DNA of 64,000 nt from Eutreptiella sp. 'Long Island Sound 2002' (taxonomy: Eukaryota > Protista > Euglenida): positions 15,810,001-15,874,000 of the forward strand of contig OZ038378.1 of assembly GCA_964036045.1 (NCBI GenBank), given 5' to 3'. The notes beneath the pieces are model-generated. The model worked only from the letters and a program-made list of their open reading frames with translations, was not told the origin of the DNA and made no database searches. Shown here one piece after another: positions 1 to 56,600 of this stretch (position 1 is the first letter of the stretch; the number at the start of each line of letters is the position of its first letter). The translations under genes and the position numbers were made by a program.

Positions 1-3000
1 TTATGTAGCCACCTTGCCCACTTGTGGGGCACTTCTGATGTTGCCCTCCGCTCTGAAGCGATGGGCACCCCCCAGGCGGTAGGAGTTCTATACACCTTGC
101 CCACTTGTGGGCCACCTCTGCTTCCGCCCCCCGCTGTGAAGCGGTGGGGACCCCCTAGGCGGCAGGGGTTTGGTAGCCACCTTGCCCACTTGTGGGCCAC
201 TTCTGATTTTGCCCTCCGCTCTGAAGCGGTGGGGACCCCCAGGCGGGAGGGGTCATGTAGCCACCTTGCCCACTTTTGGGCTACCTCTGATTTTGCCCCT
301 CGCTCTGAAGCGGTGGAGACCCCCCAGGCGGCAGGGCTTATGTAGCCACCTTGCCCAGTTGTGGGCCACCTCTGATTTTGCCCCCCGCTCTGAAGCGATG
401 GGAACCCCCTAGGCGGCAGGGGTTATGTAGCCACCTTGCCCACTTGTGGGCCACCTCTGATTTTGCCCTCCGCTTTCAATCGGTGGGGACCCCCAGGCCG
501 CAAGGGTGATGTAGCCACCTTGCCCACTTGTGGGCCACCTCTAATTCTGGCCCCCGCTCTGAAGCGGTGAAGACCCCCTAGACGGCAGCGGTTATGTAGC
601 CACTTTGCCCACTTGTGGGCCACTTGTGATTCCGCCCCGCGCTCTCAAGCGGTGGGGACCCCCCAGGCGGCAGGGGTGATGTAGCCTCCTCGCCCACTTG
701 TGGGCCACCTCTGATTTTGCACCTCGCCCTGAAGCGGTGGGGACCCCCCAGGCGGCAGGGGTTATGTAGCCACCTCGCCCAGCTGTGGGCCACCTCTGAT
801 TGTGCCCCCCGCTCTGAAGCGATGGGGACCCCCAAGCGGCAGGGGTTATGTAGCCACCTTGCCCACTTGTGGGCCACTTCCGATTCCGCCCCCTGCTCTG
901 AAGCGGTGATGACCCCCCAGGCGGCAGGGGTTATGTAGCCACCTTGCCCACTTGTGTGCCACTTCTGATTCCGCCCCCCGCCGTGAAGCGGTGGGGACCC
1001 CCTAGGCGGCAGGGGTTATGTAGCCACCTTGCCCACTTGTGGCCCACTTCTGATTTTGCCCTCCGCTCTGAAGCGGTGGGCACCCCCTAGGCGGCAGGGG
1101 TTATGTAGCCACCTTGCCCACTTGTGGGCTACTTCTGATGTTGCCCTCTGCTCTGAAGCGACGGGCACCCCCTAGGCGGCAGGGGTTATGTAGCCACCTT
1201 GCCCACTTGTGGGCCACTTGTGATTCCGCCCCCCGCTGTGATGCGGTGGCAATCCCAGGCGGCAGGGGTTATGTAGCCACCTCGCCCACTTGTGGGCCAG
1301 CTCTGATTCTGCCCCCCGCTCTAAAGCGATGGGGAGACCCCGGGCGGCAGGGGTTATGTAGCCATCTTGCCCACTTCTGGGCCACTTGTGATTCCGCCCC
1401 CTGCTGTGAAGCGGTGGGGACCCCCTAGGCGGCAGGGGTTATGTAGCCACCTTGCCCACTTGTGGGCCACTTCTGATTTTGCCCTCCGCTCTGAAGCGGT
1501 GGGGACCCCCAGGCGGGAGGAGTCATGTAGCCACCTTGCGCACTTTTGAGCTACCTCTGATTTTGCCCCTCGCTCTGAAGCGGTGGAGACCCCCCAGGCA
1601 GCAAGGGGTTATGTGGCCACCTTGCCCATTTGTGGGCCACCTCTGATTCTGGCCCCCGCTCTGAAGCGGTGGGGACCCCCTAGGCGGCAAGGGGTTATGT
1701 GGCCACCTTGCCCATTTGTGGGCCACTTGTGATTCCGCCCCGCGCTCTGAAGCGGTGGAAACCCCAGGCGGTAGGGGTGATGTAGCCACCTCGCCCACTT
1801 GTGGGCCACCTCTGATTCTGCGCCTTGCTCTGAAGCGATGGGGACCCCCCAGGCGGCAGGGGTTATGTAGCCACCCTGCCCACTTGTGGGCCACTTCCGA
1901 TTCCGCCCCCTGCTCTGAAGCGGTGGGGACTCCCCAGGCGGCAGGGGTTATGCGGCCACCTTGCCCACTTGTGGGCCACCTCTGATTTTGCCCTCCGCTC
2001 TTAAGCGGTGGGGACCCCCAGGCCGCAGGGGTGATGTAGCCACCTTGCCCACTTGTGGGCCACCTCTGATTCTGGCCCCCGCTCTGAAGCGGTGGGGACC
2101 CCCTAGGCGGCAGCGGTTATGTAGCCACCTTGCCCACTTGTGGGGCACTTCTGATTCCGCCCCCTGCTCTGAAGCGGTGGGGACCCCCCAGGCGGCAGGG
2201 GTTATGTAGCCACCTTGCCCACTTGTGGGCCACTTCTGATGTTGCCCTCCGCTCTGAAGCGATGGGCACCCCCCAGGCGGTAGGAGTTCTATACACCTTG
2301 CCCACTTGTGGGCCACCTCTGCTTCCGCCCCCCGCTGTGAAGCGGTGGAGACCCCCTAGGCGGCAGGGGTTTGGTAGCCACCTTGCCCACTTGTGGGCCA
2401 CTTCTGATTTTGCCCTCCGCTCTGAAGCGGTGGGGACCCCCAGGCGGGAGGGGTCATGTAGCCACCTTGCCCACTTTTGGGCTACCTCTGATTTTGCCCC
2501 TCGCTCTGAAGCAGTGGAGACCCCCCATGCGGCAGGGGTTATGTAGCCACCTTGCCCACTTGTGGGCCACCTCTGATTTTGCCCCCCGCTCTGAAGCGAT
2601 GGGAACCCCCCAGGCGGCAGGGGTTATGTAGCCACCTTGCCCACTTGTGGGCCACCTCCGATTACGCCCCCCGCTCTGAAGCGGTGGGGACCCCTCAGGC
2701 GGCAGGGGTTATGTAGCCACCTTGCCCACTTGTGGGCCACCTCTGATTTTGCCCTCCGCTCTTAATCGGTGGGGACCCCCAGGCCGCAAGGGTGATGTAG
2801 CCACCTTGCCCACTTGTGGGCCACCTCTGATTCTGGCCCCCGCTCTGAAGCGGTGAAGACCCCCTAGACGGCAGCGGTTATGTAGCCACCTTGCCCACTT
2901 GTGGGCCACTTGTGATTCCGCCCCGCGCTCTCAAGGGGTGGGAACCCCCAGGCGGCAGGGGTGATGTAGCCTCCTCGCCCACTTGTGGGCCACCTCTGAT

Positions 3001-4575
3001 TTTGCACCTCGCCCTGAAGCGGTGGGGACCCCCCAGGCGGCAGGGGTTATGTAGCCACCTCGCCCAGTTGTGGGCCACCTCTGATTGTGCCCCCCGCTCT
3101 GAAGCGATGGGGACCCCCAAGCGGCAGGGGTTATGTAGCCACCTTGCCCACTTGTGGGCCACCTCCGATTCCGCCCCCTGCTCTGAAGCGGTGGGGACCC
3201 CCCAGGCGGCAGGGGTTATGTAGCCACCTTGCCCACTTGTGGGCCACTTCTGATTCCGCCCCCCGCCGTGAAGCGGTGGGGACCCCCTAGGCGGCAGGGG
3301 TTATGTGGCCACCTTGCCCACTTGTGGGCCACTTCTGATTTTGCCCTCCGCTCTGAAGCGGTGGGCACCCCCTAGGCGGCAGGGGTTATGTAGCCACCTT
3401 GCCCACTTGTGGGCTACTTCTGATGTTGCCCTCCGCTCTGAATCGACGGGGACCCCCCAGGCGGCAGGGGTTATGTAGCCACCTTGCCCACTTGTGGGCC
3501 ACCTCTGATTCCGCCCCCCGCTGTGATGCGGTAGGGACCCCCCAGGCGGGAGGGGTTATGTAGCCACCTTGCCCACTTGTGGGCCACCTCTGATTCAGCC
3601 CCCCGCTCCGAAGGAACGGGGACCCCCCAAGCGGCAGGGGTTATGTAGCCACCTTGCCCAGTTGTGGGCCACCTCTGATTCGGCCCCGCGCTCTGAAGCG
3701 GCGGGGACCCCCCAGGCGGCAGGGATTATGTAGCCACCTTGCACACTTGTGGGCCACTTGTGATTTTGCCCTCCGCTCTTAAGCGGTGGGGACCCCCCAG
3801 GCGGCAGGGGTGATGTAGCCACCTTGCCCACTTGTGGGCCACTTCTGATTCTGGCTCCCGCTCTTAAGCGGTGGGGATCCCCTAGGCGGCAGGGGTTATG
3901 TAGCCACCTTGCCCACTTGTGGGCCACTGCTGATTCCGCCCCGCGCTCCGAACTGGCGGGAACCCCCAGGCGGCTGGGGTTATGTAGCCACCTTGCCCAC
4001 TTGTGGGCCACCTCCGATTCCGCCCCTCGCTCTGAAGCGGTGGGGACCCCCCAGGCGGCAGGGGTGATGTAGCCACCTTGCCCACTTGTGGGCCACCTCT
4101 GATTCTGGCTCCCGCTCTTAAGCGGTGGGGATCCCCTAGGCGGCAGGGGTTATGTAGCCACCTTGCCCACTTGTGGGCCACTGCTGATTCCGCCCCGCGC
4201 TCCGAACTGGCGGGAACCCCCAGGCGGCAGGGATTATGTAGCCTCCTCGCCCACTTGTGGGCCACCTCTGAATTTGCCCCTCGCTCTGAAGCGGTGGGGA
4301 CCCTCCAGGCGGCAGGGGTTATGTAGCCACCTCGCCCACTTGTGGGCCACTTCTGATTCTGCCCCCCGCTCTGAAGCGGTGGGGACCCCCCACGCGGCAA
4401 GGGTTATGTAGCCACCTTGCCCACTTGTGGGCCACTTCTCATTGTGCCCTCCGCTCTGAAGCGGTGGGGACCACCCAAGCGGCAGGGGTTATGTAGCCAC
4501 CTTGCCCACTTGTGGGCCACCTTTGATTCTGCCCCCCGCTCTGAAGCGATGGGGACCCCCTAGGCGGCAGGGGTT
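1..4575. repeat. Tandem satellite, 84-85 bp monomer (about 54 copies), with higher-order structure; runs off the left edge
   Basis: Monomer ttatgtagccaccttgcccacttgtgggccac(t/c)tctgatt..gccc..cgctctgaagcggtggggaccccc(c/t)aggcggcagggg recurs every 84-85 bp (e.g. 338, 423; 1016, 1101, 1186). Confidence 0.97.
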
Positions 4576-6449: not shown

Positions 6450-7950
6450 GAATGTCTTGTCACAGCTCACCCCCGCATAGGAGAATCTTTGGTACAACGG
6501 TTTTGGTGGCTCTTCTTGGTCGCCCCCATAGACCTACATTGTTGACCAAGGTAGTGCACACAGCGGTGCCCACGGAGAACCTCCATGCTTTGTATAGCAC
6601 CGCCTAGTATGGCACCGCCTCCCCCACACACTGTAGAGTGTTGGTGGGGTACAAGGACCGGGTACAAGCCGTGAACATGCAGTCACCGACATCCGTGAGT
6701 GTAGGCTAGTCAAAATCGTCATTGTTGTTGCCATTACCATCACTCGTTTCCACCTCCTCTGTCATAGCACATTGGTCCATGTGAGCCGAAAAGCTCCCCC
6801 TGAGTTCCCCAACCATAAAGAAGGTCTCTACCAGGACCGGCCCCTGCTGTACCCCTTCCACCATTTCCTGTCACTCCTATGGTCTTGCTTCTCACTAGGT
6901 TCTGCATGATCTTGCCCTATCCTGCACAATTTCCCACAAAAAATAGTAAAATATGGCTCTGTCACACAAATCCTGATCCCTTGCAATAACCAACTCCCAA
7001 GTACAATAGATCAAATCCAAATAATCCACACTGAGGGCTTCCAAGGGTGTTTGAGGTCCCGTGTTGACACTTAACAACTCCTTTCAACACGCCGGTCGTC
7101 TCACGGTGCACACGGAGACACGGGCGTTGGGCATGTACATAGAATTGCACCAAAATCAATAAAGAAGCCCGAAAAAAAATAGACACCCAGAAAGAAAGAA
7201 ATCTGCTTGGCGCTCTTCACCGGGCGTTTGTCAACGTGATCTTCCTAGACATCTGCTGCTTCCATTAGCCATCAACATCGCACAACACTTGAATGCATTG
7301 AACAAAATATTACACTGCCTGAAAAACATGGCACATGGTTTTGTATATTGTGTAGAGCAAGACAACAAGCCCCAATCTAACAATCTCATTTCCAAACGTC
7401 TGTTATACCCTCATCTGCGCATTCACCCAAGGCATCTGGCGGCTTTGCCATCCTTTCATGGACAACACGATCCCATGGACTACCTCTTTCAGCAGCTTAA
7501 ACGGTGCCACTTATTTCCCGTACGTTGCCCAATGGAGGTGCGCCTAAATCACGTGGGTATGCATTGCCACCCCAAGTGTTGGTGAGGCATACCAGGGTAT
7601 CTCAACGAGGCACCTCGTGTATTGTTTCTTGGAAGGCATATGCAAAGCCAACCTCAAGAACATCACCTGCAACGTTGCTGACATTGGTTGCATACTACAA
7701 ATGAGCTTTGAGATGGTGTCCATGTACCTGCTGAGGCAACGGCTCACTTCTCGGCTTTAGCCTGCTTTTCATCGAAGGTAAAGCTCATTCTTGGTTCAAG
7801 TAGCTTACCAAATGGTGTGTCTGTCTACGACTCTTGTGCTTTTCAACCCTAATGACAAGAACATTTTCAATATATTGCAATAGCCGCACCCTTGTGATTC
7901 CAACTTCAGCAACGAAGGGTCGTAGCACTTGTTTTGGCAACCAAGAAACA
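6450..7950 (-). pseudogene. Highly degenerate hAT-like transposase remnant
   Basis: Frameshifted motifs in hAT order: WNH..GYC (BED-like), SRYMDTISKLICSMQPMS...PSKKQYTR (Hermes DBD-like), VCLTNTW (first Asp region), VSTR (TRWN region), KWWK. Many stops. Confidence 0.35.
7170..7194 (-). other. Euglenid spliced-leader-like sequence (5'-truncated relic)
   Basis: Minus strand CTTTCTGGGTGTCTATTTTTTTTCG, 24/25 identical to the euglenid SL as I recall it (ACTTTCTGAGTGTCTATTTTTTTTCG). Followed by GG, not a GT donor. Confidence 0.85.
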
Positions 7951-10619: not shown

Positions 10620-13075
10620 GTAGCGGTTATGTGGCCATTTTGCCGACATGTGCGCTGCAAGGACGGTAGTGGGCATTTAGGTTTGTTGATCTTTTTCTAA
10701 GTGCGAGGACTCCACAGTCGGCAGGTTTTATGAAGCCATTTTGCTCATCCGTGGGATGCCACGGTGGCATTGGGTCACCTACTTTTCTTTTATTCACGTG
10801 TTTGGGACCCGGGCCCAAAGCATTAGCGGTTATGCACCTGCTCTACGCACATGTGGCGCCAAAGGACAGTATTGGCTACGTAGCCCCCCCCCCCCTTGGT
10901 CACCTTGAAGGCCACAAGGTTTATGCACTCAACCTTGGGCCGCAAAGCTGATACACATTTTGTGGGCACTTTGACTTCATCCCCGTGCTTGGGACCCCAA
11001 GACCTTGGCGGTCATTTTAGCCATTTTGCCCAAGTGCGGGTCTTGTAGATGGTAGGGGTGTTTGTAGCCACTTTGGTCTTGTTCCCATTCGGGGGTTCGA
11101 CAAGATGGCATGGTTGCCTTAGGCATCTCCATTTAATCCACGTATTCGACAGCCGAAACATTGCTTGTTACATAGCCATTTCGCCCACACGTGGGTAACA
11201 GACTCTCAAAAAGGCATCGGTGATGCAGCCACTTCTGATTGTGTCCTCTTTTTCTGGGGACCCCCGCGAATGCAAGAAGTATGCAGCTACTCCGCCCACT
11301 TCCGGGGTCCGAGACGGCAGGTTTGATTTAGCCATTTCTGGCTTGGTCCCCTTTTCGGGGGACCCCTGAGACCGTAGAGGATACGGAGCAACACCGCCCA
11401 ATGCCGGGCCCCCGAGGAGGTCGGGGTGTGTAGCCCCTTGTCATCGTGTCTCCTTTTTTGGGGACCCCCGAGAACGTAGGGGTTAAGTAGGAATTCAGCC
11501 CCCTTTCGGGCCCCCAAGAAGGCAAGGGTGATGTAGCGATTTTTGATTATACACCCTTTTTGGCGCCTCCTCGAGAACACAATGGTTAACGAGCAATACC
11601 GACCACTCCTAGCCCCCCTCCCCCCCCCCCGAGAAGGCAGGGGTGATGTAGCCACCCTAGATTTAGTTTCTTTTTCCGGGGAGAAGGGCGAGGGTTACAT
11701 AGCAATGCGGCCGACTTTTGGGCCCCCGAGAACGCAGGGGTGATGTAGCTGGTTTTGATTATGTACCTTTTGGGGGGCATTACATAGCAGTCCTGCCCAC
11801 CTCCGGGCCCCCCACAAAGTAGGGGTGCAATCGCCACTTGTGATTATGTCCCCTTTACTGGGCACCCTCAAGAACATAGTGGTTACCCCGTTGGGCTGTG
11901 TGGCCACTTTTCATCTTGTCTCCTTTCTAGGGGACCCCCGAGAACGCAGGGGTTATGTAGCGATTCAGCCCATCTTTGGGCCCCAAGAAGGCAAGGGTGA
12001 TGTAGCCATTTTTGTTTCTATACCCTTTTTGGCATATCTCTTAGAACACAGTGGTTAATACCGCCCACTGCCCCCCCCCCCCCCCCCGAGAACGCAGGGT
12101 GATATAGCCACGTCTGATTTTGTTCCCTTTTCCGGTGAGAAGGGCAAGGGTTACGTAGCAATTTGGCCGACTTTCGGGCACCAAGAAGGTAGGAGTGAAG
12201 CAGCCATTTTTGATTTTGTACCTTTTGGGGGGCATCGTCGGGAAGGTAGTGCTTTCGTAGCAATTCTGCCCACCTCCGGGCCCCTAAGAAAGTAGGGGTG
12301 AATTGGCCACATGTGATTATGTCCCCTCTTTTCGGCACCCTCAAGAACAAAGTGGTTAAAGAGCATTAGCGATGGGCCCCTTGAGAAGGCAGGGGTGATG
12401 TAGCCACTTCTGATTTTTTCTCCTTTTGCGGGAACTCCCACGCAACATAGGGGTTACGTAGCAGTTCGGCCCTCCTTCGGGCCCGCGAGAAGATGGGAGT
12501 GATGTGGTCATTTCTGGTTTTCTCGTCATTTCGGGGGATCATTGTGAACACAGTAGTTGCATAACAATACCGCCCACTTCTGAGTTCCCGAGCAAGTAGC
12601 GGTCATGCAGCCACTTGTAATTATCTGCCATTTTCTAGGCACCATCAAGGACGCATTGGTTACCCAAAAGTACCGCCCACCGCCGGGCGCCAGGAGAAGA
12701 CACCAGTAATTTCGCCGGTTTTGTTGTTGTCCCCTTTTCTGGCTCCCCCCAACATCGCAGAGATTGCGTAGCAATACCCTCCCCATTTTGGCCCCCAAGA
12801 AGGGGGGGCTAGCCATTGATTAGGTCCCTTCTCCCAAGGACCCCCAAGAACGAAGGGCCCGCGTAGCAGTTTCGCCCAATCTGGAGCTCCCAAGAAGGCA
12901 GGCCTGAGTTATCCACTTGTGTTTCTATCCCCTTTTCCCTGAACACCTGAGAACACATGGGTTACGTAGCAATTTCTCCCACTTCCAAGCACCCGAGCCA
13001 GCAAGGGTGATGTCGCCACTTGTTATTTAATCCCCTGTTCTCGGGACCTGAGAAAGAAGGGTTTTGTTTGTTTTG
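10620..13075. repeat. Degenerate composite array related to the 85-bp satellite (oldest copy of the 3-5 kb unit)
   Basis: Recurrent gcagggg(t/g)(g/t)atgtagccac, tgattttgtcccc and ggggacccccgagaa motifs. 10850-11100 matches 14455-14720; 11080-11500 matches 15990-16400. Confidence 0.85.
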
Positions 13076-31579: not shown

Positions 31580-31965
31580 ATATGGTCAAACGCCACATCT
31601 TATTCTCACAACGGTTGCTGTCCGCAGGTTTGCCATTGTCTTCGGTGAGGCACGAATGTAGGAAATCTGCCGTCGTCACTTATTCAAAAGGTCTCGCCTC
31701 TCCTGCAGCTCCTCCTTTCTGTCCCAAGCACACCGAGGACATACACAAGGCAAGGCTGTAGGAGATGTGCAGAACATGGCCTTGTTAGAAATCCTCCAAG
31801 GCTGCATCCACGAAGCATGTTGGCAGCACTGTCTGGGGTTGCAACGGTACTCTCGGATGCAGGAAAATAGCACCTTCCCAACACTTCAGTCAACCATTCT
31901 GCAATGGCCTCCCTCCTCTCATGAGGATGAGGAAAGTCACTCAAGTCCAAAAGCAGAGTGATTGA
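31580..31965 (-). pseudogene. hAT transposase middle part (second catalytic Asp and CxxH), copy 1
   Basis: LLDLSDFPHPH..EAIAEWLTEVL...VATPDSAANMLRGC...PCSAHLLQ (TDNAANM and CxAH motifs). Confidence 0.85.
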
Positions 31966-32937
31966 TACCCCTTCGGGGGGATTCCCCCGTCGTCCGCCCC
32001 CGCCGGCCTCCCCTCCATCGGTCCCTTGATGGTGGGGCGGGGCGGCCGGTACGGCTCAATGCGGGTCATTGGCATGGTGTCGCTCTGTGGGCGATGTGGT
32101 GCACCTGTTTGCCGCTGTTCGCCCCCTGCGTCCCTCCCTCGGCGTGCGGCCGTGTCCCGCGTCCGCGCCTGCTTCTTCCCCTTTGTGCCTCTCGTGCCGC
32201 GCTCGTCGCCGCTGACGCGCGCACTGCGTGTGTCCCCTGTTCCCCTCTTCTCTACCCTTGCCCTGCCGCCCTTACCCCTCTCTCTCTGCCTCGTCCTCTC
32301 TCCTCTACCCACCACCTCACCGCGTCCCAACCCTTCGTCACACGGAGGGGCGTCGCTTGCCCATCTCCGTCAGGTTATTACCGTCTGCTATCACTGCCCG
32401 TGCTGTACACCCTCCCGAGTAGTCCACTCGCGGGTACCACCTACGCGGCCGATGCCCCTACCCTTCCCCCTGGAGTCGGGTTGTACCCGGAGGCCTCTCG
32501 CCCTGGCCCACCAATGTGGGTGTGCGTCGTGTGGCACGACTTCGCCATGTGGCCCACGGAGCCTCCGGCTCAGCACATCCCAGGCCGGCCGTGGCCGATC
32601 CCTCAGAGCGCCGGCCACCCGTAAGCCCAACGGCCCCTCCGCAGCACCACCACGCTGGCCTCCCGGCAGTGGGCAGTCCGCATCCCAGGGAGATCAGCCC
32701 TACAGGGGCGCCTTTATGCAGTCTCTCGGCACCGTTCGTGTGAACGCCGGCTGAAGCCAGCCAGGATCCCGGCGCCAGCGTGTCGGAACACCGGCTCGTC
32801 CGGCTGTTCGCCACCCCCGCAAGGGGCGGGGTGCTGGCTCCGTTCTCCACCCGACGGGTGCAGCGCCTCTACATCTCGTAGCAGGATTCTCGTGGAACAC
32901 CGCACACATCGCCCGTCGTTCCACCCCGCCGCCAGCT
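31966..32937 (-). mobile_element. Truncated copy of the 2-kb Helentron/Helitron2-like insert (hairpin end only)
   Basis: Starts taccccttcggggggattcccccgt; cut at 32937 by the 1307-bp duplication junction. Confidence 0.55.
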
Positions 32938-33272
32938 TGCCATTGTCTTCGGTGAGGCACGAATGTAGGAAATCTGCCGTCGTCACTTATTCAACAGGTC
33001 TCGCCTGTCCTGCAGCTCCTCCTTTCTGTCCCAAGCACACCGAGGACATACACAAGGCAAGGCTGTAGGAGATGTGCAGAACATGGCCTTGTTAGAAATC
33101 CTCCAAGGCTGCATCCACGAAGCATGTTGGCAGCACTGTCTGGGGTTGCAACGGTACTCTCGGATGCAGGAAAATAGCACCTTCCCAACACTTCAGTCAA
33201 CCATTCTGCAATGGCCTCCCTCCTCTCATGAGGATGAGGAAAGTCACTCAAGTCCAAAAGCAGAGTAATTGA
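32938..33272 (-). pseudogene. hAT transposase middle part, copy 2
   Basis: Near-identical to copy 1, offset 1307 bp. Confidence 0.85.
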
Positions 33273-35288
33273 TACCCCTTCGGGGGGATTCCCCCGTCGT
33301 CCGCCCCCGCCGGCCTCCCCTCCATCAGTCCCTTGATGGTGGGGCGGGGCGGCCGGTACGGCTCAATGCGGGTCATTGGCATGGTGTCGCTCTGTGGGCG
33401 ATGTGGTGCACCTGTTTGCCGCTGTTCGCCCCCTGCGTCCCTCCCTCGGCGTGCGGCCGTGTCCCGCGTCCGCGCTTGCTTCTTCCCTTTTGTGCCTCTC
33501 GTGCCGCGCTCGTCGCCGCTGACGCGCGCACTGCGTGTGTCCCCTGTTCCCCTCTTCTCTACCCTTGCCCTGCCGCCCTTACCCCTCTCTCTCTGCCTCG
33601 TCCTCTCTCCTCTACCCACCACCTCACCCCGTCCCAACCCTTTGTCACACGGAGGGGCGTCGCTTGCCCATCTCCGTCAGGTTATTACCGTCTGCTATCA
33701 CTGCCCATGCTGTACACCCTCCCGAGTAGTCCACTCGCGGGTACCACCTATGCGGCCGATGCCCCTACCCTTCCCCCTGGAGTCGGGTTGTACCCGGAGG
33801 CCTCTCGCCCTGGCCCACCAATGTGGGTGTGCGTCGTGTGGCACGACTTCGCCATGTGGCCCACGGAGCCTCCGGCTCAGCACATCCCAAGCCGGCCGTG
33901 GCCGATCCCTCAGAGCGCCGGCCACCCGTAAGCCCAACGGCCCCTCCGCAGCACCACCACGCTGGCCTCCCGGCAGTGGGCAGTCCGCATCCCAGGGAGA
34001 TCAGCCCTACAGGGGCGCCTTTATGCAGTCTCTCGGCACCGATCGTGTGAACGCCGGCTGAAGCCAGCCAGGATCCCGGCGCCAGTGTGTCGGAACACCG
34101 GCTCGTCCGGTTGTTCGCCACCCCCGCAGGGCGGGGTGCTGGCTCCGTTCTCCACCCGACGGGTGCAGCGCCTCTACATCTCGTAGCGGGATTCTCGTGG
34201 AACACCGCACACATCGCCCGTCGTTCCACCCCGCCGCCAGCTTCGCATCCGTCGGATCCCCGTTGTGCGCCCGCCCTCCATAGGGGCGTTGTGGCCAGGG
34301 CTGAGATGGCTGCCCCGGCGCTCCTTCTGGCGCCGTACCCGCCGCCTTTCCCCTCTTGGGTCGTTGTACGCCTCCTTTACTCCGGTCCCCGACGCGGACC
34401 CTGACTTCTCCACTGCCGCTCCACATGCCTCGCGTATCCCCTGGTGTCTGGCACTCAGACTGGCTTGCACCGTTGGCCTTCGCCTTGCTGCCCGGCCGCG
34501 GTGCCCGCATCTGCCGTACCCCATCGTCACGGCCTCTGCTGCCGCTGATCCGGTGCCCGGCCCGTCGTCTAGGGCTCCAAGCTCCCGACGTTCATCCCCT
34601 CGTCTCCCTCTGCCATGCTGGCCATCCTCCACTTCCGGCCTCTTCCCCGCCACCTCTTGGCCCATCGTGTCCCCGTGCCCGTCCCCTGCCCTATACTTCC
34701 CCTCCGCCCTTCCCCGACCACCTCCTTCCAGTGTCGACATCTCGAGCCCACCCAGCCCGCAGCCCGCACTCCACTCCCTTCTGCCCTCCCTGCACCCTCC
34801 GTGGGCCTGGCTCTGCATCCTGTCGCCCATGTGGACCCTCTCCTGGCCCGCCCTACGCCGCGCCATCGCCCCGCCCATGTCCCCCTCAGTACCACCCCTC
34901 CCTCTGCAACAGCTCCCTCGGCGTACGCACCCTGGGCTTTCTCCCCCGTTCCTTGGGACACTTCAGGTCCACCCCCGCGAGCGCCTCTCCCAGCATCCTC
35001 CTCCACCTGCCCTCCTCCATCTCCGGCCCCCGGTCCCGCGGCCTCCCCGCCCTGCGGACCAGGTCGCAGAACGGGCGAGTCCCGCGCCTCTCCTGTCCCC
35101 CTCTCGTCCTCCTTGCCCACTTCACGTAGCGGACCAGCTCCGCCACGTCCCCCGCCCTCCACCCCCGGACTGTCCCCGGCACCCTCCGCGCCGGATGCCG
35201 CGCATACCGCCGCGGTTGTGGTGACTCCGAACCCCAGTCCGTCGGTGTCGGTTCTGGGCTGGGGCTGGTGGGCTGCGCAACGGGGGAG
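33273..35288 (-). mobile_element. 2.0-kb GC-rich non-autonomous Helentron/Helitron2-like element
   Basis: T|T insertion without TSD; asymmetric inverted repeat TCCCCCGT/ACGGGGGA; CCCC-GAA-GGGG hairpin 2 nt from the end. Interior has an RNase H-like ARAEMAAPALLL segment. Confidence 0.55.
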
Positions 35289-35850
35289 AAAAGGCTTGTT
35301 GACTAGACTACAGGTCACCGCGCCGTAGCAGCGGTGTTGGTGGCTGCGGGTCCACGGGTTGTGTTGAATAGCTACAAACGGAGAGCCCCAAGCCTGTCGG
35401 GTCTTCACGAACAGGCACCACATTTTACTCATTCTAAGGGACTTCTTCACATGCATCATGCGGTTCACCGTTTTCTTGTGCAGCGGCACATAGGTGGGGC
35501 AGAGTTCACACCTCCAATTCTGGAATTTTGGATCCCGAACATCTTGTCAAAGGGTCTTAGGGATTTGGCAAAGTGCTGTGCGGCACGATAATGGTGTGCA
35601 AAACAAGATTGAAAAGGTATTTTGCATAGTACATGCCTGTCATCAGACACGGAAATGATCTTTGCATGTGCTGACACAATGGCCAACTCCAGGTAAACAT
35701 TGTAATGGTGCTGCTTCAGGTGGGTGAACAGGGCGGTAGTGCTTCCTCCAGCTTGTTGGATGCGCTGTGAGCACGATTTGCAGGCGTACAAGTTTGGAAT
35801 TCCACTGGCCTTCAGGTATTCGTAGACACATGACTTCTTTAGACACTTCT
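35289..35850 (-). pseudogene. hAT transposase N-terminal part (BED finger, Hermes DBD, first catalytic region), copy 1
   Basis: KSCVYEYL...YACKSCSQRIQQAGGSTTALFTHLKQHH (zf-BED), HFAKSLRPFDKMFG, FVAIQHNPWT..HRCYGAVT. Frameshift near 35535. Confidence 0.88.
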
Positions 35851-36429
35851 AGTCTTAGCTGGGTTCTGAGTGTGAGCCTGGTTGTTCCGGTTGTTGGTGA
35901 TCCCCACGTTCTTTAGGCGCAAGCTGCTCCTTGCGTTGACTTGAAACAGACACGCGGTGGGCCTTGTCTTTGGCATATCGGCAAAATTGTGCCTCATACA
36001 TGGCGTAGGTTTTGTCCTCCCCTCCAGCCACTTAACCGAGAAATGCTCCTGGACAGGTGTACTTCCGCTTACAATTATAAAGCCGGTCCCACCACGTAAC
36101 AGTGCAGGAGTAAAGCTTCGTCCTCTGTTCTTTCGAGCCTCCGTCCCAGAAAGTGCTAGGCAGCTGCAACTGCACACCACGGTTGTGGTCCTTGCATAGG
36201 ACCTGTGCAAAACTGTCCATAACTCCATCCATTTCTGCATGTCACACAAAGATGAGTAACCCGACAAGGAAAAGGGGAGCCAGACAAAGAAGAGGAGCTA
36301 GACAAAGAAGAGGATCCAGGGGCGAAGAAGAGGGAAACCACTGAAGTGTTCTGACCAGGTGAAGTAATGTGACAGTGGAAGGCATTTGCAATGGACTTTG
36401 TTTACAATGATTAGTGAATTTCGTTTGCA

Positions 36430-36827
36430 ATATCGTATGCAATATGGTCAAACGCCACATCTTATTCACACAACGGCTGCTGCCCGCAGGTTTGCCATTG
36501 TCTTCGGTGAGGCACGAATGTAGGAAATCTGCCGTCGTCACTTATTCAACAGGTCTCGCCTCTCCTGCAGCTCCTCCTTTCTGTCCCAAGCACACCGAGG
36601 ACATACACAAGGCAAGGCTGTAGGAGATGTGCAGAACATGGCCTTGTTAGAAATCCTCCAAGGCTGCATCCACGAAGCATGTTGGCAGCACTGTCTGGGG
36701 TTGCAACGGTACTCTCGGATGCAGGAAAATAGCACCTTCCCAACACTTCAGTCAACCATTCTGCAATGGCCTCCCTCCTCTCATGAGGATGAGGAAAGTC
36801 ACTCAAGTCCAAAAGCAGAGTGATTGA
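36430..36827 (-). pseudogene. hAT transposase middle part, copy 3
   Basis: Near-identical to copies 1 and 2. Confidence 0.85.
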
Positions 36828-38829
36828 TACCCCTTCGGGGGGACTCCCCCGTCGTCCGCCCCCGCCGGCATCCCCTCCATCAGTTCCTTGATGGTGGGGC
36901 GGGGCGGCCGGTACGGCTCAATGCGGGTCATTGGCATGGTGTCGCTCTGTGGGCGATGTGGTGCACCTGTTTGCCGCTGTTCGCCCCCTGCGTCCCTCCC
37001 TCGGCGTGCGGCCGTGTCCCGCGTCCGCGCCTGCTTCTTCCCCTTTGTGCCTCTCGTGCCGCGCTCGCTGCGTGTGTCCCCTGTTCCCCTCTTCTCTACC
37101 CTTGCCCTGCCGCCCTTACCCCTCTCTCTCTGCCTCCCCCTCTCTCCTCTACCCACCACCTCACCGCGTCCCAACCCTTCGTCACACGGAGGGGCGTCGC
37201 TTGCCCATCTCCGTCAGGTTATTACCGTCTGCTATCACTGCCCGTGTTGTACACCCTCCCGAGTAGTCCACTCGCGGGTACCACCTATGCGGCCGATGCC
37301 CCTACCCTTCCCCCTGGAGTCGGGTTGTACCCGGAGGCCTCTCGCCCTGGCCCACCAATGTGGGTGTGCGTCGTGTGGCACGACTTCGCCATGTGGCCCA
37401 CGGAGCCTCCGGCTCAGCACATCCCAGGCCGGCCCGTGGCCGATCCCTCAGAGCGCCGCCCACCCGTAAGCCCAACGGCCCCTCCGCAGCACCACCACGC
37501 TGGCCTCCCGGCAGTGGGCAGTCCGCATCCCAGGGAGGTCAGCCCTACAGGGGCGCCTTTATGCAGTCTCTCGGCACCGATCGTGTGAACGCCGGCTGAA
37601 GCCAGCCAGGATCCCGGCGCCAGTGTGTCGGAACACCGGCTCGTCAGGCTGTTCGCCAACCCCTGCAAGGGGCGGGGTGCTGGCTCCGTTCTCCACCCGA
37701 CGGGTGCAGCGCCTCTACATCTCGTAGCGGGATTCTCGTGGAACACCGCACACATCGCCCGTCGTTCCACCCCGCCGCCAGCTTCGCATCCGTCGGATCC
37801 CCGTTGTGCGCCCGCCCTCCCTAGGGGCGTTGTGGCCAGGGCTGAGATGGCTGCCCCGGCGCTCCTTCTGGCGCCGTACCCGCCGCCTTTCCCCTCTTGG
37901 GTCGTTGTACGCCTCCTTTACTCCGGTCCCCGACGCGGACCCTGACTTCTCCACTGTCGCTCCACATGCCTCGCGTATCGCCTGGTGTCTGGCACTCAGA
38001 CTGGCTTGCACCGTTGGCCTTCGCCTTGCTGCCCGGCCGCGGTGCCCGCATCTGCCGTACCCCATCGTCACGGCCTCTGCTGCCGCTGATCCGGTGCCCG
38101 GCCCGTCGTCTAGGGGTCCATGCTCCCGACGTTCATCCCCTCGTCTCCCTCTGCCATGCTGGCCATCCTCCACTTCCGGCCTCTTCCCCGCCACCTCTTG
38201 GCCCACCGTGTCCCCGTGCCCGTCCCCTGCCCTATACTTCCCCTCCGCCCGTCCCCGACCACCTCCTTCCAGTGTCGACATCTCGAGCCCACCCAGCCCG
38301 CAGCCCGCACTCCACTCCCTTCTGCCTTCCCTGCACCCTCCGTGGGCCTGGCTCTGCATCCTGTCGCCCATGTGGACCCTCTCCTGGCCCGCCCTACGCC
38401 GCGCCATTGCCCCGCCCATGTCCCCCTCAGTACCACCCCTCCCTCTGCAACAGCTCCCTCAGCGTACGCACCCTAGGCTTTCTCCCCCGTTCCTTGGGAC
38501 ACTTCAGGTCCACCCCCGCGAGCGCCTCTCCCAGCATCCTCCTCCACCTGCCCTCCTCCATCTCCGGCCCCCGGTCCCGCGGCCTCCCCGCCCTGCGGAC
38601 CAGGTCGCAGAACGGGCGAGTCCCGCGCCTCTCCTGTCCCCCTCTCGTCCTCCCTGCCCACTTCACGTAGCGGACCAGCTCCGCCACGTCCCCCGCCCTC
38701 CACCCCCGGACTGTCCCCGGCACCCTCCGCGCCGGATGCCACGCATACCGCCGCGGCTGTGGTGACTCCGAACCCCAGTCTGTCGGTGTCGGTTCTGGGC
38801 TGGGGCTGGTGGGCTGCGCAACGGGGGAG
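36828..38829 (-). mobile_element. 2.0-kb GC-rich non-autonomous Helentron/Helitron2-like element, second full copy
   Basis: Perfect 9-bp asymmetric IR ctcccccgt (36844-36852) / acgggggag (38821-38829), hairpin at 36830-36840. Removing it restores hAT frame VNEPFSITLLLDLSDF. Confidence 0.6.
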
Positions 38830-51499: not shown

Positions 51500-53560
51500 G
51501 GGGGGGGCGCGAGTTTGGCCGGATGGCGTCTTGTGTTGGTCTCCTCACCCCCGGGGCGCGCCTTCACCCCCCTCATTCTTATTCCTTACTTGACGGTTTT
51601 ATTTTTGTTTCTTATGGGCGACAAAGGCTGCAACATTGTGCAAGACCAAAAAATATCCAATGCAGTGCACTCATTATCACTCGCGTTGAGTAATTCCTGC
51701 AGAGCACGTTGCGACGCACAATGCAGCATCATAATGCAGCATCATGGGGCACGCCGTGGGAGCTGGCGATATCCCAAAACATGTTGGTGGCCTCCGTGCA
51801 GATGGCACCCGCCCCGTGATGGACAAGCGTCCCTGCAAGGGCCACATTCGCCTGTTGTCGGGTGACCCTGACACCCCATCAAGGCGAGGGCCCTGTCATC
51901 CCGCACGCGTGCCTGGGATGCATCCACGGCGTATTTCGCCTTATCCTTGGCACTTGCGCAGCATGCTGGTCGAGGTACCGCGCGTTATCGGACTCGTCTG
52001 AGATGAAGGGAGCCAAATATTGTATGATACCCCCAAGCGCTTCCGTTGCCACCTGTTGGATGACCTTGAGCGGGGCGCAAGTGTTCATGCACCACTGGTG
52101 TCCTGTCGCTAGGCGCAACATGTGCTTGCGCTACAGGGCAAAGTCCCCGTCCGGCTGCAACTTGAGCCCCAGGTACGGGACAGAGTCCGTTGTTGCAACC
52201 AAATATGTGGGGTTTGAGAGGTGGGGACAGCAGCGAGCCACAGTGCTGTGACGCCTTTGGTGGAGGCCATCGAGCATTCGTGGAATTTAACTTCTGTGCC
52301 CATCATGCCGAGGCCCATGCAATAGGCTAGGTGGTGAGCCTATCATCTTTTCGTCACTTATTTTAGCCATCAGGAAAATACAATCAAAAACAGATTTTGA
52401 CAAAGAAAATCAAAGACCTATTTATGAAGCACTTTCCTCTTAATTGGTGAGGGCACAGGATCTAAGTTTAACCACCCTATTGCGGAGTAAAAAAACAAAG
52501 CCTAGTCAATGATGCCCTTGGTGTCTTGGTGATTTGTTACCGTGAGAAGGTCTTCCCCAAGACACAAGGACACAAAACAAAGACACAACGACAATATACA
52601 CTCGGCTCACGCGATCCACGGTGCTTAATGTAATCGGCGGCAAGAACTCGGATGGCGAACTGCCGGTTGTTGAAATTGTTGCGACGCAATCGGTGAGCGG
52701 AGGATGTACAAGGATGGACAAGGAGGTCTGAAACATAGACACCCAGAAAGTGTCTCGGCCACCACTTCCACGCCCCACATGAAGTCCGCCACGTCGTTGG
52801 CTACCAACAGCAGGTCGTCAATCGAGGTCGGGACAATGCGATGCCGAATAACTCCTTGGGTGCGCAGACGGAGCCCACATTCCCGAAGCAAGGGCTCAAG
52901 GAGGAGCGAGTATATCAGCAGCTCTCCGAATTGCATTGGCACACACCCTGGTGCCTATGTACGGCCTGTGTCAACCTGTGTGCCGTGACGAGGCGCAGGT
53001 GTGGTGCCGCGGGGAGATTTCTTTGCGTCCAGAGCACCTCATTCTTCTGCAACAACCCTTTCACCATTGCCTCCATGGTTTGTGCTTGCCGGCCTACACG
53101 CCTCTCCGCTCTTCATGTGCGCCCCTCGGGACTAGTGTCGCTACCGCCGCTCAACACATTGTTCACCTATTCTACCACCTCCCAAGCTCCTCTCTTTGCA
53201 AGGGCATCCTCATCCAACACTAGGGACCAGGGCCTCGTCCTAGTGTTCTGCAACTGACGGCCAGGTTAGCTAGGTTGTATTGCTTGCTTGGTGTGTGGCT
53301 TGGCCAAGCGGTCTACCGCTTTGGTTGCTTGACCCTTTGCTCCTCTTGTCTTTGGGGGTTATTGGAAAGGTCCGCCAAAGTCTCTGCTAAAACATCCGCA
53401 TCCACAACCTTCGCCGCAACCTTTGCAACCTTGACGCCCTCCATCTGGTGCGCATCTATATCACCTTTGGGCCGCAATACCCTAGTTCCTCCTGTTGCAC
53501 CTAATCTGGTACTGCATGGTCTGACCAAACCCTTGAGCTCGCTTCGAGTTCGTTTGCAAC
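51500..53560 (-). pseudogene. Non-LTR retrotransposon reverse transcriptase, unit U1 (interrupted by the SL-capped insert)
   Basis: LRPKGD..VAKVAAKV, E*VNNV..DT (subdomain 3-like), GVCQ..LLIYSLLLEPLLR, TSIDDLLLVA, PYLGLKL, thumb LGGIIQYLAP. Confidence 0.85.
52314..52753 (-). other. 440-bp insert beginning with a spliced-leader-like sequence (candidate retrocopied trans-spliced RNA)
   Basis: Starts ACACTTTCTGGGTGTCTATGTTTCAG exactly at the breakpoint. Compared with U2 (ccgagg-ta-ctcggcc) it replaces 2 nt; no TSD and no poly(A). Confidence 0.7.
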
Positions 53561-53672: not shown

Positions 53673-56600
53673 GAGGCCATGACAGCTTTGGAGGGAGCCA
53701 TGGGGCAAGAGGTCACCCTCAAGGCAAAGGTGGACACTTTGCTCAAGAGGGTGGTGGTGCTTGAGCAAGATAAGACTTTCTTGCGGGGCCCCATCAGCAG
53801 AATGCAAGGTGCAACCTCCACACCGGGTGGAGCTTCGGCTTCTAGGTCGCAACGCATATTCCCTGTGTTCATTGCATGGCATTTTAACCACACAGCATAA
53901 TTCTTGGTTTAAGGTGGACCTCCACACCTGCTTCGAAAACACTTGCATTCAACTGTCCCCATAAAGTGACACAACATGAAGCGTTTTGTAAATATACTTG
54001 CTCTTGCAATCGGGTTGGCCATCTTTGACGGCGGACAACGCCGGAGCAGCCCACTCCACAAGAGGATAGGCATCGTTTAAAGTCCCAGGCGCTCTTGCTA
54101 AAAGATGGTTCACGTGTTAGTGGGTTGGGGTTGGCTAGCGCCCGCACCATCCCTGCTTCTATTGCAGCTGCACAAGAGAGCACAAATAGGAGACATGCAC
54201 CACACACGTTTCATGCACGTTGATGCATGCATGGAATGTGCTTGGCACCACATCGCATGTCGAAAAAGGGAACTTGGAATTCCTTGATATGTCAAACCTT
54301 CCACATTGCGCGACCGGGAAGTCAAACAAATAAATGGCTTTATGGGTCCACCTCTCTGTTTTGGGAAGTGGCGTCCCTGTCCCACGAGGATCCCACCCTC
54401 CCACTGATACCAAAGCCATAGTACAGCACAGGGTGTAGTTTAGCACTCCGATGTCTTCCCGTAGTGCTTGTTCGTGAAAGGTCCATAATCATGAGTCAGG
54501 TTGTGCGCCCTGTGCCCCCCCCTCCCCCCGGGTGGAACATACAAGGGTTGTGCTGGTCGAGGCATTGTCAATTATGCTGCGAACTGCACATCTGCTACCC
54601 GGTCCCGCGGCTCAAAGCATGCAGAGCATCAACAAGGGCAGCAATGGCAAACAAGCCACGAAAGAAAAGCCGAAGAGGGGGCGTGTCGGCCAGCGCAGTG
54701 GGGCTACACAAATTTCGTGCCCCACCACCACCACCGGTGCAAAGGCGCCTGGTCGAGGTCACATCCATAGACATGGGAGTCGTCTATCACAAGGCAGAGC
54801 GAGCCACAACATATATAAGAGGGCTAGGCATGAGACTCACGCTAGCAACAATTCATGTGCGGTGATGGACGTACATAGGTGATGCATGTGCTTTGCCCCA
54901 CATGGCATTTCGTAAAATCGAACCAAGAAGCCCCAGGCGGCAACTAGGATGTCGGTTTCTTTCCATTAAGTGTGACCAAGTAGTCAACATGGAAGTGGCT
55001 GTTGGTCCCATGGTACCACAAGTCACTTGCGGGGCATAAGCACATGTTGGGGAGTTTGGACCCGATTCAAAACAGCCCCACTTTCCGTCAAGACGCTACA
55101 TGCAGGCGCACTTGGTTTGTAGACACCCAGTCGGTTTTCCGTTCTGGCGTGCCAGGAGAAGGACTCTTTGGTATGATTACATGAGCGGTTTTGTCATTCT
55201 CTGTGGATTGTGACCCTTGCCTTGCAACCGACATCTGGGGGACCGAATCGAAGATAGGCAGCACAAGCTCTGCCATAGTATCTCCCAAAGACAAGGGTAC
55301 CCGCAGGTGCCCGACACAATACGGTGCAACATGTGGATGTTCGTAGTAGCTCCCATTGGCTCTTCGGAGACGACAAATGGTGGTGTTGGTTCAGGCCACC
55401 AAACACGTTGCGGTGGCCAAAGATAGGGGTGATCCCCCAGGTCTTCTTCCCTTGGTGCGGTGTCTCTCGCCCCATTCATCCTTTGAATGACACCAACGTC
55501 AACCGGTTGAGTGTCATGGTTGACATTACATTTACAAGTACCTCCGTTACGTCAATTTACCATGGGTTACGTGCGGGCGGGGGGGGGGGGGTCTGGCTAG
55601 ATGGCGTCTTGTGTTTGTCTTCCCACCCCGTGGGCCGCGCCTTCGGCTCCCTCCTTCTTATTCCTCACTTGACGGTCTTCGTTTTGTTCATATGGGCTGC
55701 GTGGCATCTCAACAGGGGTTGCAACATTGTGCAAGACAAAAAACAAATCCAATACAGTGCACTCATCATCGCTCAAGTCAAGTAGTCCTTGCAGAGTTAC
55801 ACGCTGCGACGCAAAGTGCTACATCACCGGGCACGTTGTGGGAGCTAGCAGTGTCTGAAAACATGTTCGCGGCCTCCGTGCGGACGGAACCCGCGCCGTG
55901 ATTGACAATGGTCCCTACAAGGGCCACAGCCGCCTGTTGGTGGGTCACCCTGACACCCCATCAGGGCAAGCGACCTATGGTCCCACACGCTGGCCTGGGA
56001 TGCATCGACGGCGTATTTCACTGTATCCTTGGCACTTGTTCAGCAAGCTGGTCCACCTACTGCATGGTATCCGATTCGTGCGAGATGAAGGGAGCCACGT
56101 ACTGCATGATACCCCCCATCACTCCCATGACCACCTCTTGGATGACCTTGAGCGGGGCAAAATTGTTCATGCACCACTGGTGTCCTGCTACTAGGCGCAA
56201 CATGTGCTTGCACTACAGGGCAAATTCTCCTTCCGGCTACAGCTTGAGCCCTAGGTACGGGATAGAGTCCGCAGGGGCCACCCAATCTCTATGGTTTGAG
56301 AGGTGCGGACAAAAGCGCAGGTAGAGTGCTATGACCCCTTTGGCGGTGGCCATCGCACATTTGTGCAATTTGACTTCCATGCCCATCATGCCGAGGTACT
56401 CGGCCACCGCTTCCACGCCCCACACGAAGTCCGCCAGGTCCCGGGCTACCAACCACAGGTCGTCGATGGAGCCATGTACCAGGCCATGCTCGTCCCCTCC
56501 TTGGGGGCGCAAACGGAGCCCACGCGCCCGAAGCAAGCGCTCTAGTAGGTGCGAGTGTAGCATTGCCTCCATGGTTTATGCCTGCTGGCCTACACGCCTC

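Follow-up and report, generated by a model that had tools for sequence, protein, structure and literature searches.

A spliced-leader-headed insert in a euglenid genome: a probable fossil strong-stop cDNA of a long terminal repeat retrotransposon

How does a spliced leader (SL) come to lie inside a chromosomal repeat, cut off from the splice donor that follows it in its own genes? This question is raised by a 440-bp insert on the minus strand of a 64,000-nt stretch of the genome of the euglenid Eutreptiella sp. 'Long Island Sound 2002' (contig OZ038378.1, positions 15,810,001 to 15,874,000; hereafter the window). The insert lies in U1, one of the repeat units U1 to U3, and begins with a decayed SL. 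An earlier interpretation of the letters alone (the sequence-only reading) proposed that it is a complementary DNA (cDNA) of a mature trans-spliced RNA that was pasted into the genome, perhaps as break-repair filler. That proposal stands, supported by the SL head and by SL-less genomic relatives in which the same body follows an AG acceptor. We further suggest that the insert is probably a fossil minus-strand strong-stop cDNA, made from the SL trans-spliced RNA of a long terminal repeat (LTR) retrotransposon.

The insert and its leader

Alignment of U1 with U2 and U3, which lack the insert, confirms the size and the exact limits given by the sequence-only reading (Table 1), and the minus-strand 5' end quoted there is read identically at the breakpoint. 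The flanks in U1 run ...GGCCGAG, insert, CCTCGGCATG..., and those in U2 and U3 run ...GGCCGAG TA CCTCGGCATG... without interruption. Because U2 and U3 read GAG TA CCTCGG where U1 holds the insert, two nucleotides (TA) were lost at insertion; apart from these, the downstream host flank is continuous with the upstream flank in both units. No target duplication is found at either insert edge in this alignment, and no poly(A) or A-run is present at the insert end in the minus-strand sequence 51900-53200, again as first described. The insert therefore lacks the hallmarks of a LINE-type retrocopy (LINE, long interspersed nuclear element), namely poly(A) or an element-specific 3' tail together with a target duplication. 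It shows those of capture by end joining, with no duplication, a small loss and only one end that coincides with an LTR end.

The leader of this species is known because it can be read from the genome's own SL-RNA genes. Within the assembly (2.28 Gb in 2,317 contigs), the published 26-nt Euglena gracilis SL has 6,449 sites at two or fewer mismatches, and of the first 12 sites examined, eight are SL-RNA genes with a conserved upstream region that runs into the leader through ...GGTAC and with a GTAT donor downstream. Exact leaders with GTRT behind them number 1,133, some of them in arrays, and another 1,234 exact leaders, at dispersed sites, have a next base that is not G. The genome's SL is identical to the published E. 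gracilis SL (PMC6242988) and a published SL primer bears an AC prefix, as the insert does (PMC5654406), so that the (AC)-prefixed euglenid leader given in the sequence-only reading was right and does not differ substantially from that of the species. The 28-nt Eutreptiella leader is likewise AC-prefixed.

The first bases of the insert, ACAC..., are those with which the 28-nt form of the SL begins. Its 25-nt head stands at an edit distance of 6 from that form (end-anchored); the differences are an A>G change, a T>G change together with the loss of 3 nt from the T run, and a G>A change of the last base, at a would-be CpG. When both strands of the window (128 kb) are scanned with the same measure, nothing falls below 8 edits except a second relic at 7170-7194 on the minus strand; by this comparison, the resemblance of the head to the SL is beyond chance. 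The A>G leader variant is itself present at 69 exact genome sites, the second relic included. In a maximum-likelihood tree of the 411-nt body, the terminal branch of the insert is 0.053, which predicts about 1.4 substitutions in the SL, where three (one at the CpG) and a homopolymer indel are observed; the decay of the head thus appears compatible with the divergence of the body. As the sequence-only reading noted, the GT donor after the SL is missing, and the head runs into GACCTCC, not into the GTAT... of the SL-RNA genes. Because the leader is added only to RNA, the DNA of the insert is certified as RNA-derived.

The parent repeat and the 3' end of the insert

Elsewhere in the genome the body is matched 36 more times, with 80-90% identity; it represents the 3' end of a repeat with about 30 copies, which differ from one another by indels. 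These matches begin at insert position 23-32 or later, and none bears the SL head. All 27 copies that reach the junction carry ...CTTCCCTTGCTCTCAG, a pyrimidine tract plus CAG, directly before GACCTCC. Because the body follows the G of this CAG in 27/27 copies, the leader in the insert is attached exactly where an AG acceptor ends, the signature of trans-splicing. That the piece passed through a trans-spliced RNA is taken as proven because a donor-less SL exon is joined at the acceptor of its parent. The sequence-only reading had suggested searching for an SL-less parent that follows an AG acceptor, and these 27 copies provide it; nor is the piece a common repeat whose copies are all SL-headed, since no other copy found, of about 30, bears the SL.

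Several observations concern the nature of this parent. All complete copies end in ...CCTATTACA, with a 3' CA, after which at least 13 unrelated flanks follow. The homology among copies begins at varied distances upstream, and the TG expected at an LTR start falls outside the 1.5-kb flanks examined. Eleven copies read ...TTACA TGGTAGCAG... with the same sequence continuing beyond, and a twelfth context (L028) shares the 9-mer TGGTAGCAG and then differs. All 9 nt are complementary to ...CUGCUACCA, with which initiator tRNA-Met ends once CCA has been added; this tRNA is canonical, and its gene is found seven times in the genome. The chance of a 9-nt tRNA match at a fixed position is about 4e-6. 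A short primer site for initiator tRNA is typical of Ty1/copia-type elements.

The copies are also ordered in pairs. In all seven same-strand pairs, read in the orientation of the element, the first member carries the 9-mer and the second, downstream of it, has a unique flank. Five pairs are spaced 15.7-22.4 kb, one 40 kb and one 80 kb. Of the seven pairs, five have structural variants common to both members, and L018 and L022 are mutual nearest neighbours with 99.89% identity over 1,822 nt. All seven pairs thus show the arrangement of two direct copies, an internal region and an upstream tRNA primer site. From the LTR end onward, a frame remains open for at least 501 aa, to the end of the stretch examined, and is conserved in three elements. 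A genome scan with the integrase domain rve placed none of the 150 scored matches (of 26,985 candidates) between paired copies, too few having been scored for this to be informative. Since a search with the exact-end pattern returned only 17 genome sites, all among known copies, this small family appears almost completely sampled. Nested insertions account for some of the apparent 5' truncations, as in L027, which is split by 19 kb, and L010, which abuts another repeat; the truncated copies show no visible target duplication.

Taken as sequence, the parent repeat reads as the LTR of a retrotransposon. The tail of a 5'-truncated LINE or short interspersed nuclear element (SINE) was dropped as the best reading, and demoted to a rival, in view of the 9-mer at the primer site, its match to the tRNA and the pairwise order of the copies. 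The body is not a gene, and the RNA that was copied would be the 5' part of a transcript from an LTR retrotransposon, not a cellular mRNA; the ATG-less frame reported by the sequence-only reading exists and lies within the non-coding LTR tail. The reported 7-bp hairpin near the insert 3' end is likewise borne out, with its arms ATAGGCT at 52337-52343 and AGCCTAT at 52322-52328. It is kept in most family members and is predicted to fold, no better than shuffled sequences do (z = -0.22). Stems in U5 near primer sites are common. A search of the insert against Rfam returned noise only.

The 3' end of the insert connects these observations. It reads ...TTGCA TGGG, in which the LTR end is followed by TGG, the opening three bases of the primer binding site, and its alignment reaches position 439 in primer-site copies and 436-437 in unique-flank copies. 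No tRNA-derived stretch is found in the insert beyond TGG. The sense 3' end thus lies at the border of U5 and the primer site, and the sense 5' end is the 5' end of the template RNA, as in a strong-stop cDNA. On this sequence evidence, the insert probably represents a fossil of such a cDNA.

The proposed course of events is as follows. An element of about 19-24 kb, with LTRs of at least 1.9 kb, would be transcribed from its 5' LTR, and the transcript would be trans-spliced at the pyrimidine tract and AG located 411 nt before the LTR end, so that a leader of 26-28 nt replaces the native 5' end. Initiator tRNA-Met at the primer binding site would prime reverse transcription through U5, which would halt at the capped end of the SL. 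Because the end of the resulting cDNA complements the leader rather than R, the cDNA should fail the first strand transfer and remain a dead-end product. Made double-stranded, it would have been joined into a chromosomal break in U1, one unit of a tandem repeat derived from a dead reverse transcriptase (RT) gene, with the loss of 2 nt, and would since have diverged by about 5%. Capture at a break, and not integrase or target-primed reverse transcription, is suggested because there is no duplication, two bases were lost and only one LTR end is present. We infer the tRNA priming, the failure of strand transfer and the end-joining capture from these features.

The features of the insert and its flanks are collected in Table 1. 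U1 to U3 form a tandem arrangement, in which U2 and U3 have a period of 5,226 bp and U1 is a partial, more diverged unit (80-86% identical). A piece of U2 (56240-56575, minus strand) matches RVT_1 with E = 0.0025 and 18 bits, under the Pfam cut-off of 29.6, and carries a SIDDL box, then ...KC..., then YLGLKL; in U1, the insert separates the DD box from the downstream motifs. Among the 24 host pieces scanned with Pfam, the other 23, U1 pieces included, contain no RT or endonuclease domain, and no PDB relative of the host pieces was found. The host repeat can fairly be considered dead and, if only weakly, RT-like. Of the dead LINE RT described by the sequence-only reading, the dead and RT-like parts hold and the LINE part is not shown: with RVT_1 below threshold, and because no endonuclease was found in the scanned pieces, the LINE class is unproven.

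Table 1. Positions in the window of the parts of the insert and of the adjoining host sequence.
Feature	Position	Strand	Remarks
Whole insert, 440 bp	52314..52753	-	absent from U2 and U3
Host flank upstream of insert	52754..52954	-	open piece of dead RT-like U1, ends ...SIDDLLLVANDVADFMWGVEVVAE
SL exon, decayed, 25 nt	52729..52753	-	AC-prefixed start; without the GT donor and intron of SL-RNA genes
LTR tail, last 411 nt (U5 side)	52318..52728	-	begins at the base after the internal AG acceptor
U5 hairpin	52322..52343	-	7-bp arms, 8-nt loop, 4 nt ahead of the LTR end
TGGG past LTR end	52314..52317	-	TGG = first 3 primer binding site bases after 5' LTR copies
Host flank downstream of insert	52112..52313	-	LGMMGTEVKFHEC...; YLGLKL later, frame shifted

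Weighing the strong-stop interpretation against its alternatives

Several points weigh against the strong-stop interpretation. The SL has decayed by six edits, a 3-nt gap included, and the use of the acceptor is predicted from genome sequence. No exact match to a further SL junction at the GACCTCC acceptor exists genome-wide, so that a single event is at issue. The insert retains only three primer-site bases, which alone would match by chance one time in 64. The complementarity of the primer site stops at 9 nt, with the next bases mismatching the tRNA, and a search for a tRNA matching the primer site over at least 12 nt gave a sole match that is not a tRNA. The 501-aa frame has no Pfam domain and no atlas relative, and no RT, integrase or gag domain was found there. 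We hold the interpretation as no more than probable: the parent is known from its LTR copies and the 501 codons after them, little of the primer site remains in the insert, and one such event is at hand.

Four other explanations need to be considered. One, which we regard as unlikely, is retroposition by a LINE enzyme: the repeat would be a non-LTR or LINE-dependent tail whose hairpin 3' end is recognised, and an SL-capped RNA, trans-spliced at an internal site, would have been copied into U1 by target-primed reverse transcription. Such a tail would suit copies that share a 3' end and vary in their 5' extents, the lack of poly(A), the lack of a visible target duplication at truncated copies, the hairpin near the 3' end, and a genome rich in SL-headed retrocopies with long open frames. 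It leaves unexplained, however, the 9-mer complementary to tRNA-Met after the end of 11 copies, the 7/7 ordered pairs (16-22 kb apart) and the terminal TGG of the insert, and the varied 5' ends can be nested insertions, as in L027 and L010. The end at the LTR/primer-site border could instead be a coincidence in a generic cDNA fragment of the SL-spliced retrotransposon RNA, primed at random or downstream and trimmed before capture, which is the sequence-only reading in its unrefined form. Break-captured cDNAs in yeast and mouse do come from many positions (PMC11372161, PMC4516963), and three primer-site bases are kept here. Yet out of a transcript of many kilobases, the insert ends within 3-4 nt of the tRNA-primed start, and its 5' end extends all the way to the AC-prefixed start of the SL, as run-off at the cap predicts, which makes this explanation quite unlikely.

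A template-switch chimera is highly improbable. In that case an RT working on the host RNA would have jumped to the SL-spliced RNA, run to its cap and returned 2 nt away, so that U1 was born with the insert. The shared orientation of the insert and the host RT and the precision of the return, with 2 nt lost, would be accounted for; U1, however, belongs with U2 and U3 to a tandem array at the DNA level (period 5,226 bp) and is not a separate retrotransposed copy, and the point of the jump would match the LTR/primer-site border by chance. The possibility that the head is not an SL at all, and is pyrimidine-rich filler or divergent LTR sequence of chance likeness, is close to refuted. It can appeal to the six edits with their 3-nt gap and to an LTR region that is also pyrimidine-rich there. 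Against it, the second true relic is the only other site under 8 edits in the scanned 128 kb, 12-13 edits separate the head from the LTR sequence that other copies have ahead of the junction, while the body is up to 90% identical to them, and the match fits exactly between the host breakpoint and the AG acceptor.

Leaders elsewhere in the genome and comparison with known systems

The window and the genome contain further leader sequences. The second relic of the window reads ...CTTTCTGGGTGTCTATTTTTTTTCG followed by GGCTTC, carries the same A>G variant as the insert, and heads a repeat of about 360 bp with at least 1,491 candidate copies; most of the scored copies begin at the last bases of the leader, without the leader itself, and three others share it. 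SL-like strings of the form GCCACTTCTGATTGTGTCC...TTTTTCG also occur on the plus strand of the window, ending at 11254, 12430, 16792, 19391 and 20015 and standing 8-9 edits from the leader. Some of these weak strings lie in or near repeated units at 11079, 15992 and 19213, and they may be very old relics or chance matches.

Genome-wide, donor-less leaders head several repeat families that have unique upstream flanks and long open frames. The major family, which includes L047, L048, L054 and L056 among others, continues from the SL into ATTGACCCTCAG..., and the upstream flanks of its members are unique; over the 500 codons examined its frames are uninterrupted, with no Pfam domain in that N-terminal part. 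When ten SL-headed sequences were searched with Pfam over their first 500 aa, nothing was found but a C-type lectin domain (E = 6.7e-8) in L044 (G000:C1:835136-838162), where an exact leader stands on a 439-aa open frame; by its sequence, L044 is a candidate SL-tagged retrogene. At L045 (G000:C1:1041248-1044274), three stacked leaders (a full one, an AC-prefixed A>G variant and a 5'-truncated one) precede a single body, and on sequence this stack is a dinoflagellate-style signature of repeated trans-splicing and retro-copying. No case of TGGTAGCAG downstream of an SL was found in the loci L031-L073.

Two further loci touch on the LTR family. A search for SL junctions at the GACCTCC acceptor gave three matches with 3 mismatches. 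At G000:C7:60910840-60910866, on the minus strand, TGAATTTTTTTTCG is joined to GACCTCCTTGCCC, a possible second case of a leader at this acceptor. L010 (G000:C2:35167161-35167548) is an LTR-tail copy that extends from 6 nt past the acceptor to the LTR end, without a leader; it may be another strong-stop piece, captured and since eroded at its end, or its limits may be coincidental. It was considered as a second SL-capped copy and rejected, its upstream ACACTT...TTTTTAC belonging to another repeat by alignment with L058. Elsewhere in the window, positions 1-4500 hold an 85-bp satellite of more than 50 copies with a G+C content of about 64%, and positions 31580-37676 hold units at a 1,307-bp spacing, with ARAGORN tRNA-like calls on the minus strand for Ala (32767-32858) and Arg (34074-34163).

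If the strong-stop interpretation is true, the insert would be a natural record, rare as far as we could find, of an LTR-retrotransposon transcript undergoing SL trans-splicing in a euglenid. The same record would show reverse transcription of the spliced RNA up to its cap and the use of a strong-stop cDNA as filler in chromosome repair. It also defines a searchable signature, an SL head with a body ending at an LTR end plus TGG, in a genome with more than 1,200 exact donor-less leaders. We can extend this, speculatively and with little expectation that it holds as stated, to the proposal that Euglena LTR retrotransposons are routinely SL trans-spliced inside their 5' LTR and that tRNA-primed, dead-end strong-stop cDNAs are a regular natural break filler. 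Were that so, SL tags combined with LTR/primer-site ends would mark past break-repair events genome-wide, and trans-splicing would act as an unrecognised brake on LTR-element replication. No literature on SL-tagged retrocopies in Euglena was found, in a search of incomplete coverage.

Relic spliced leaders on dinoflagellate retrogenes were reportedly described by Slamovits and Keeling in 2008. Dinoflagellate retrogenes with relic SLs are documented in later work (Song et al., 2017, PMC5585692; PMC12014239). These retrogenes share with the insert a genomic SL exon that lacks the SL-RNA donor and is joined at the acceptor of the parent. They differ in that they are protein-coding, often carry stacked relics and are re-expressed, whereas the insert is a non-coding LTR tail with a single relic, is not reused and belongs to a euglenid. 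The parallel to dinoflagellate retrogene recycling drawn by the sequence-only reading is thus not borne out for this insert, which has a single relic, no stacking and an LTR tail for a body.

Capture of Ty1 cDNA at double-strand breaks in yeast is said to go back to reports by Teng (1996) and by Moore and Haber (1996). Ty1 cDNA and replication intermediates are captured at yeast breaks by end joining, with the LTR as a hotspot (PMC11372161), and in mouse zygotes cDNAs of retrotransposons and of spliced mRNAs are captured at Cas9 breaks (PMC4516963). As proposed for the insert, these captures use LTR-retrotransposon cDNA as filler, with no target duplication and a small loss; the LTR region is a hotspot among them, and some of their inserts contain bases found only in cDNA. 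Those captures were induced in the laboratory, whereas the present insert is natural and old, its RNA origin is certified by the SL, and its two ends fit one defined intermediate.

A closer counterpart for the RNA step is Cer1 of C. elegans, a Ty3-type element with an SL1-trans-spliced subgenomic mRNA, whose genomic RNA skips that site (PMC3315495). As proposed for the parent described here, the transcript of an LTR retrotransposon serves as a substrate for SL trans-splicing. For Cer1 this was shown on RNA alone, whereas here the spliced form would have left a DNA copy. Within the present genome, the SL-headed repeats carry the same leader as the insert, which differs from them as a dead-end piece of an LTR element and the sole SL-bearing copy found among about 30. 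The ingredients are each known elsewhere, and what the insert would add is their combination, in an LTR element of a euglenid.

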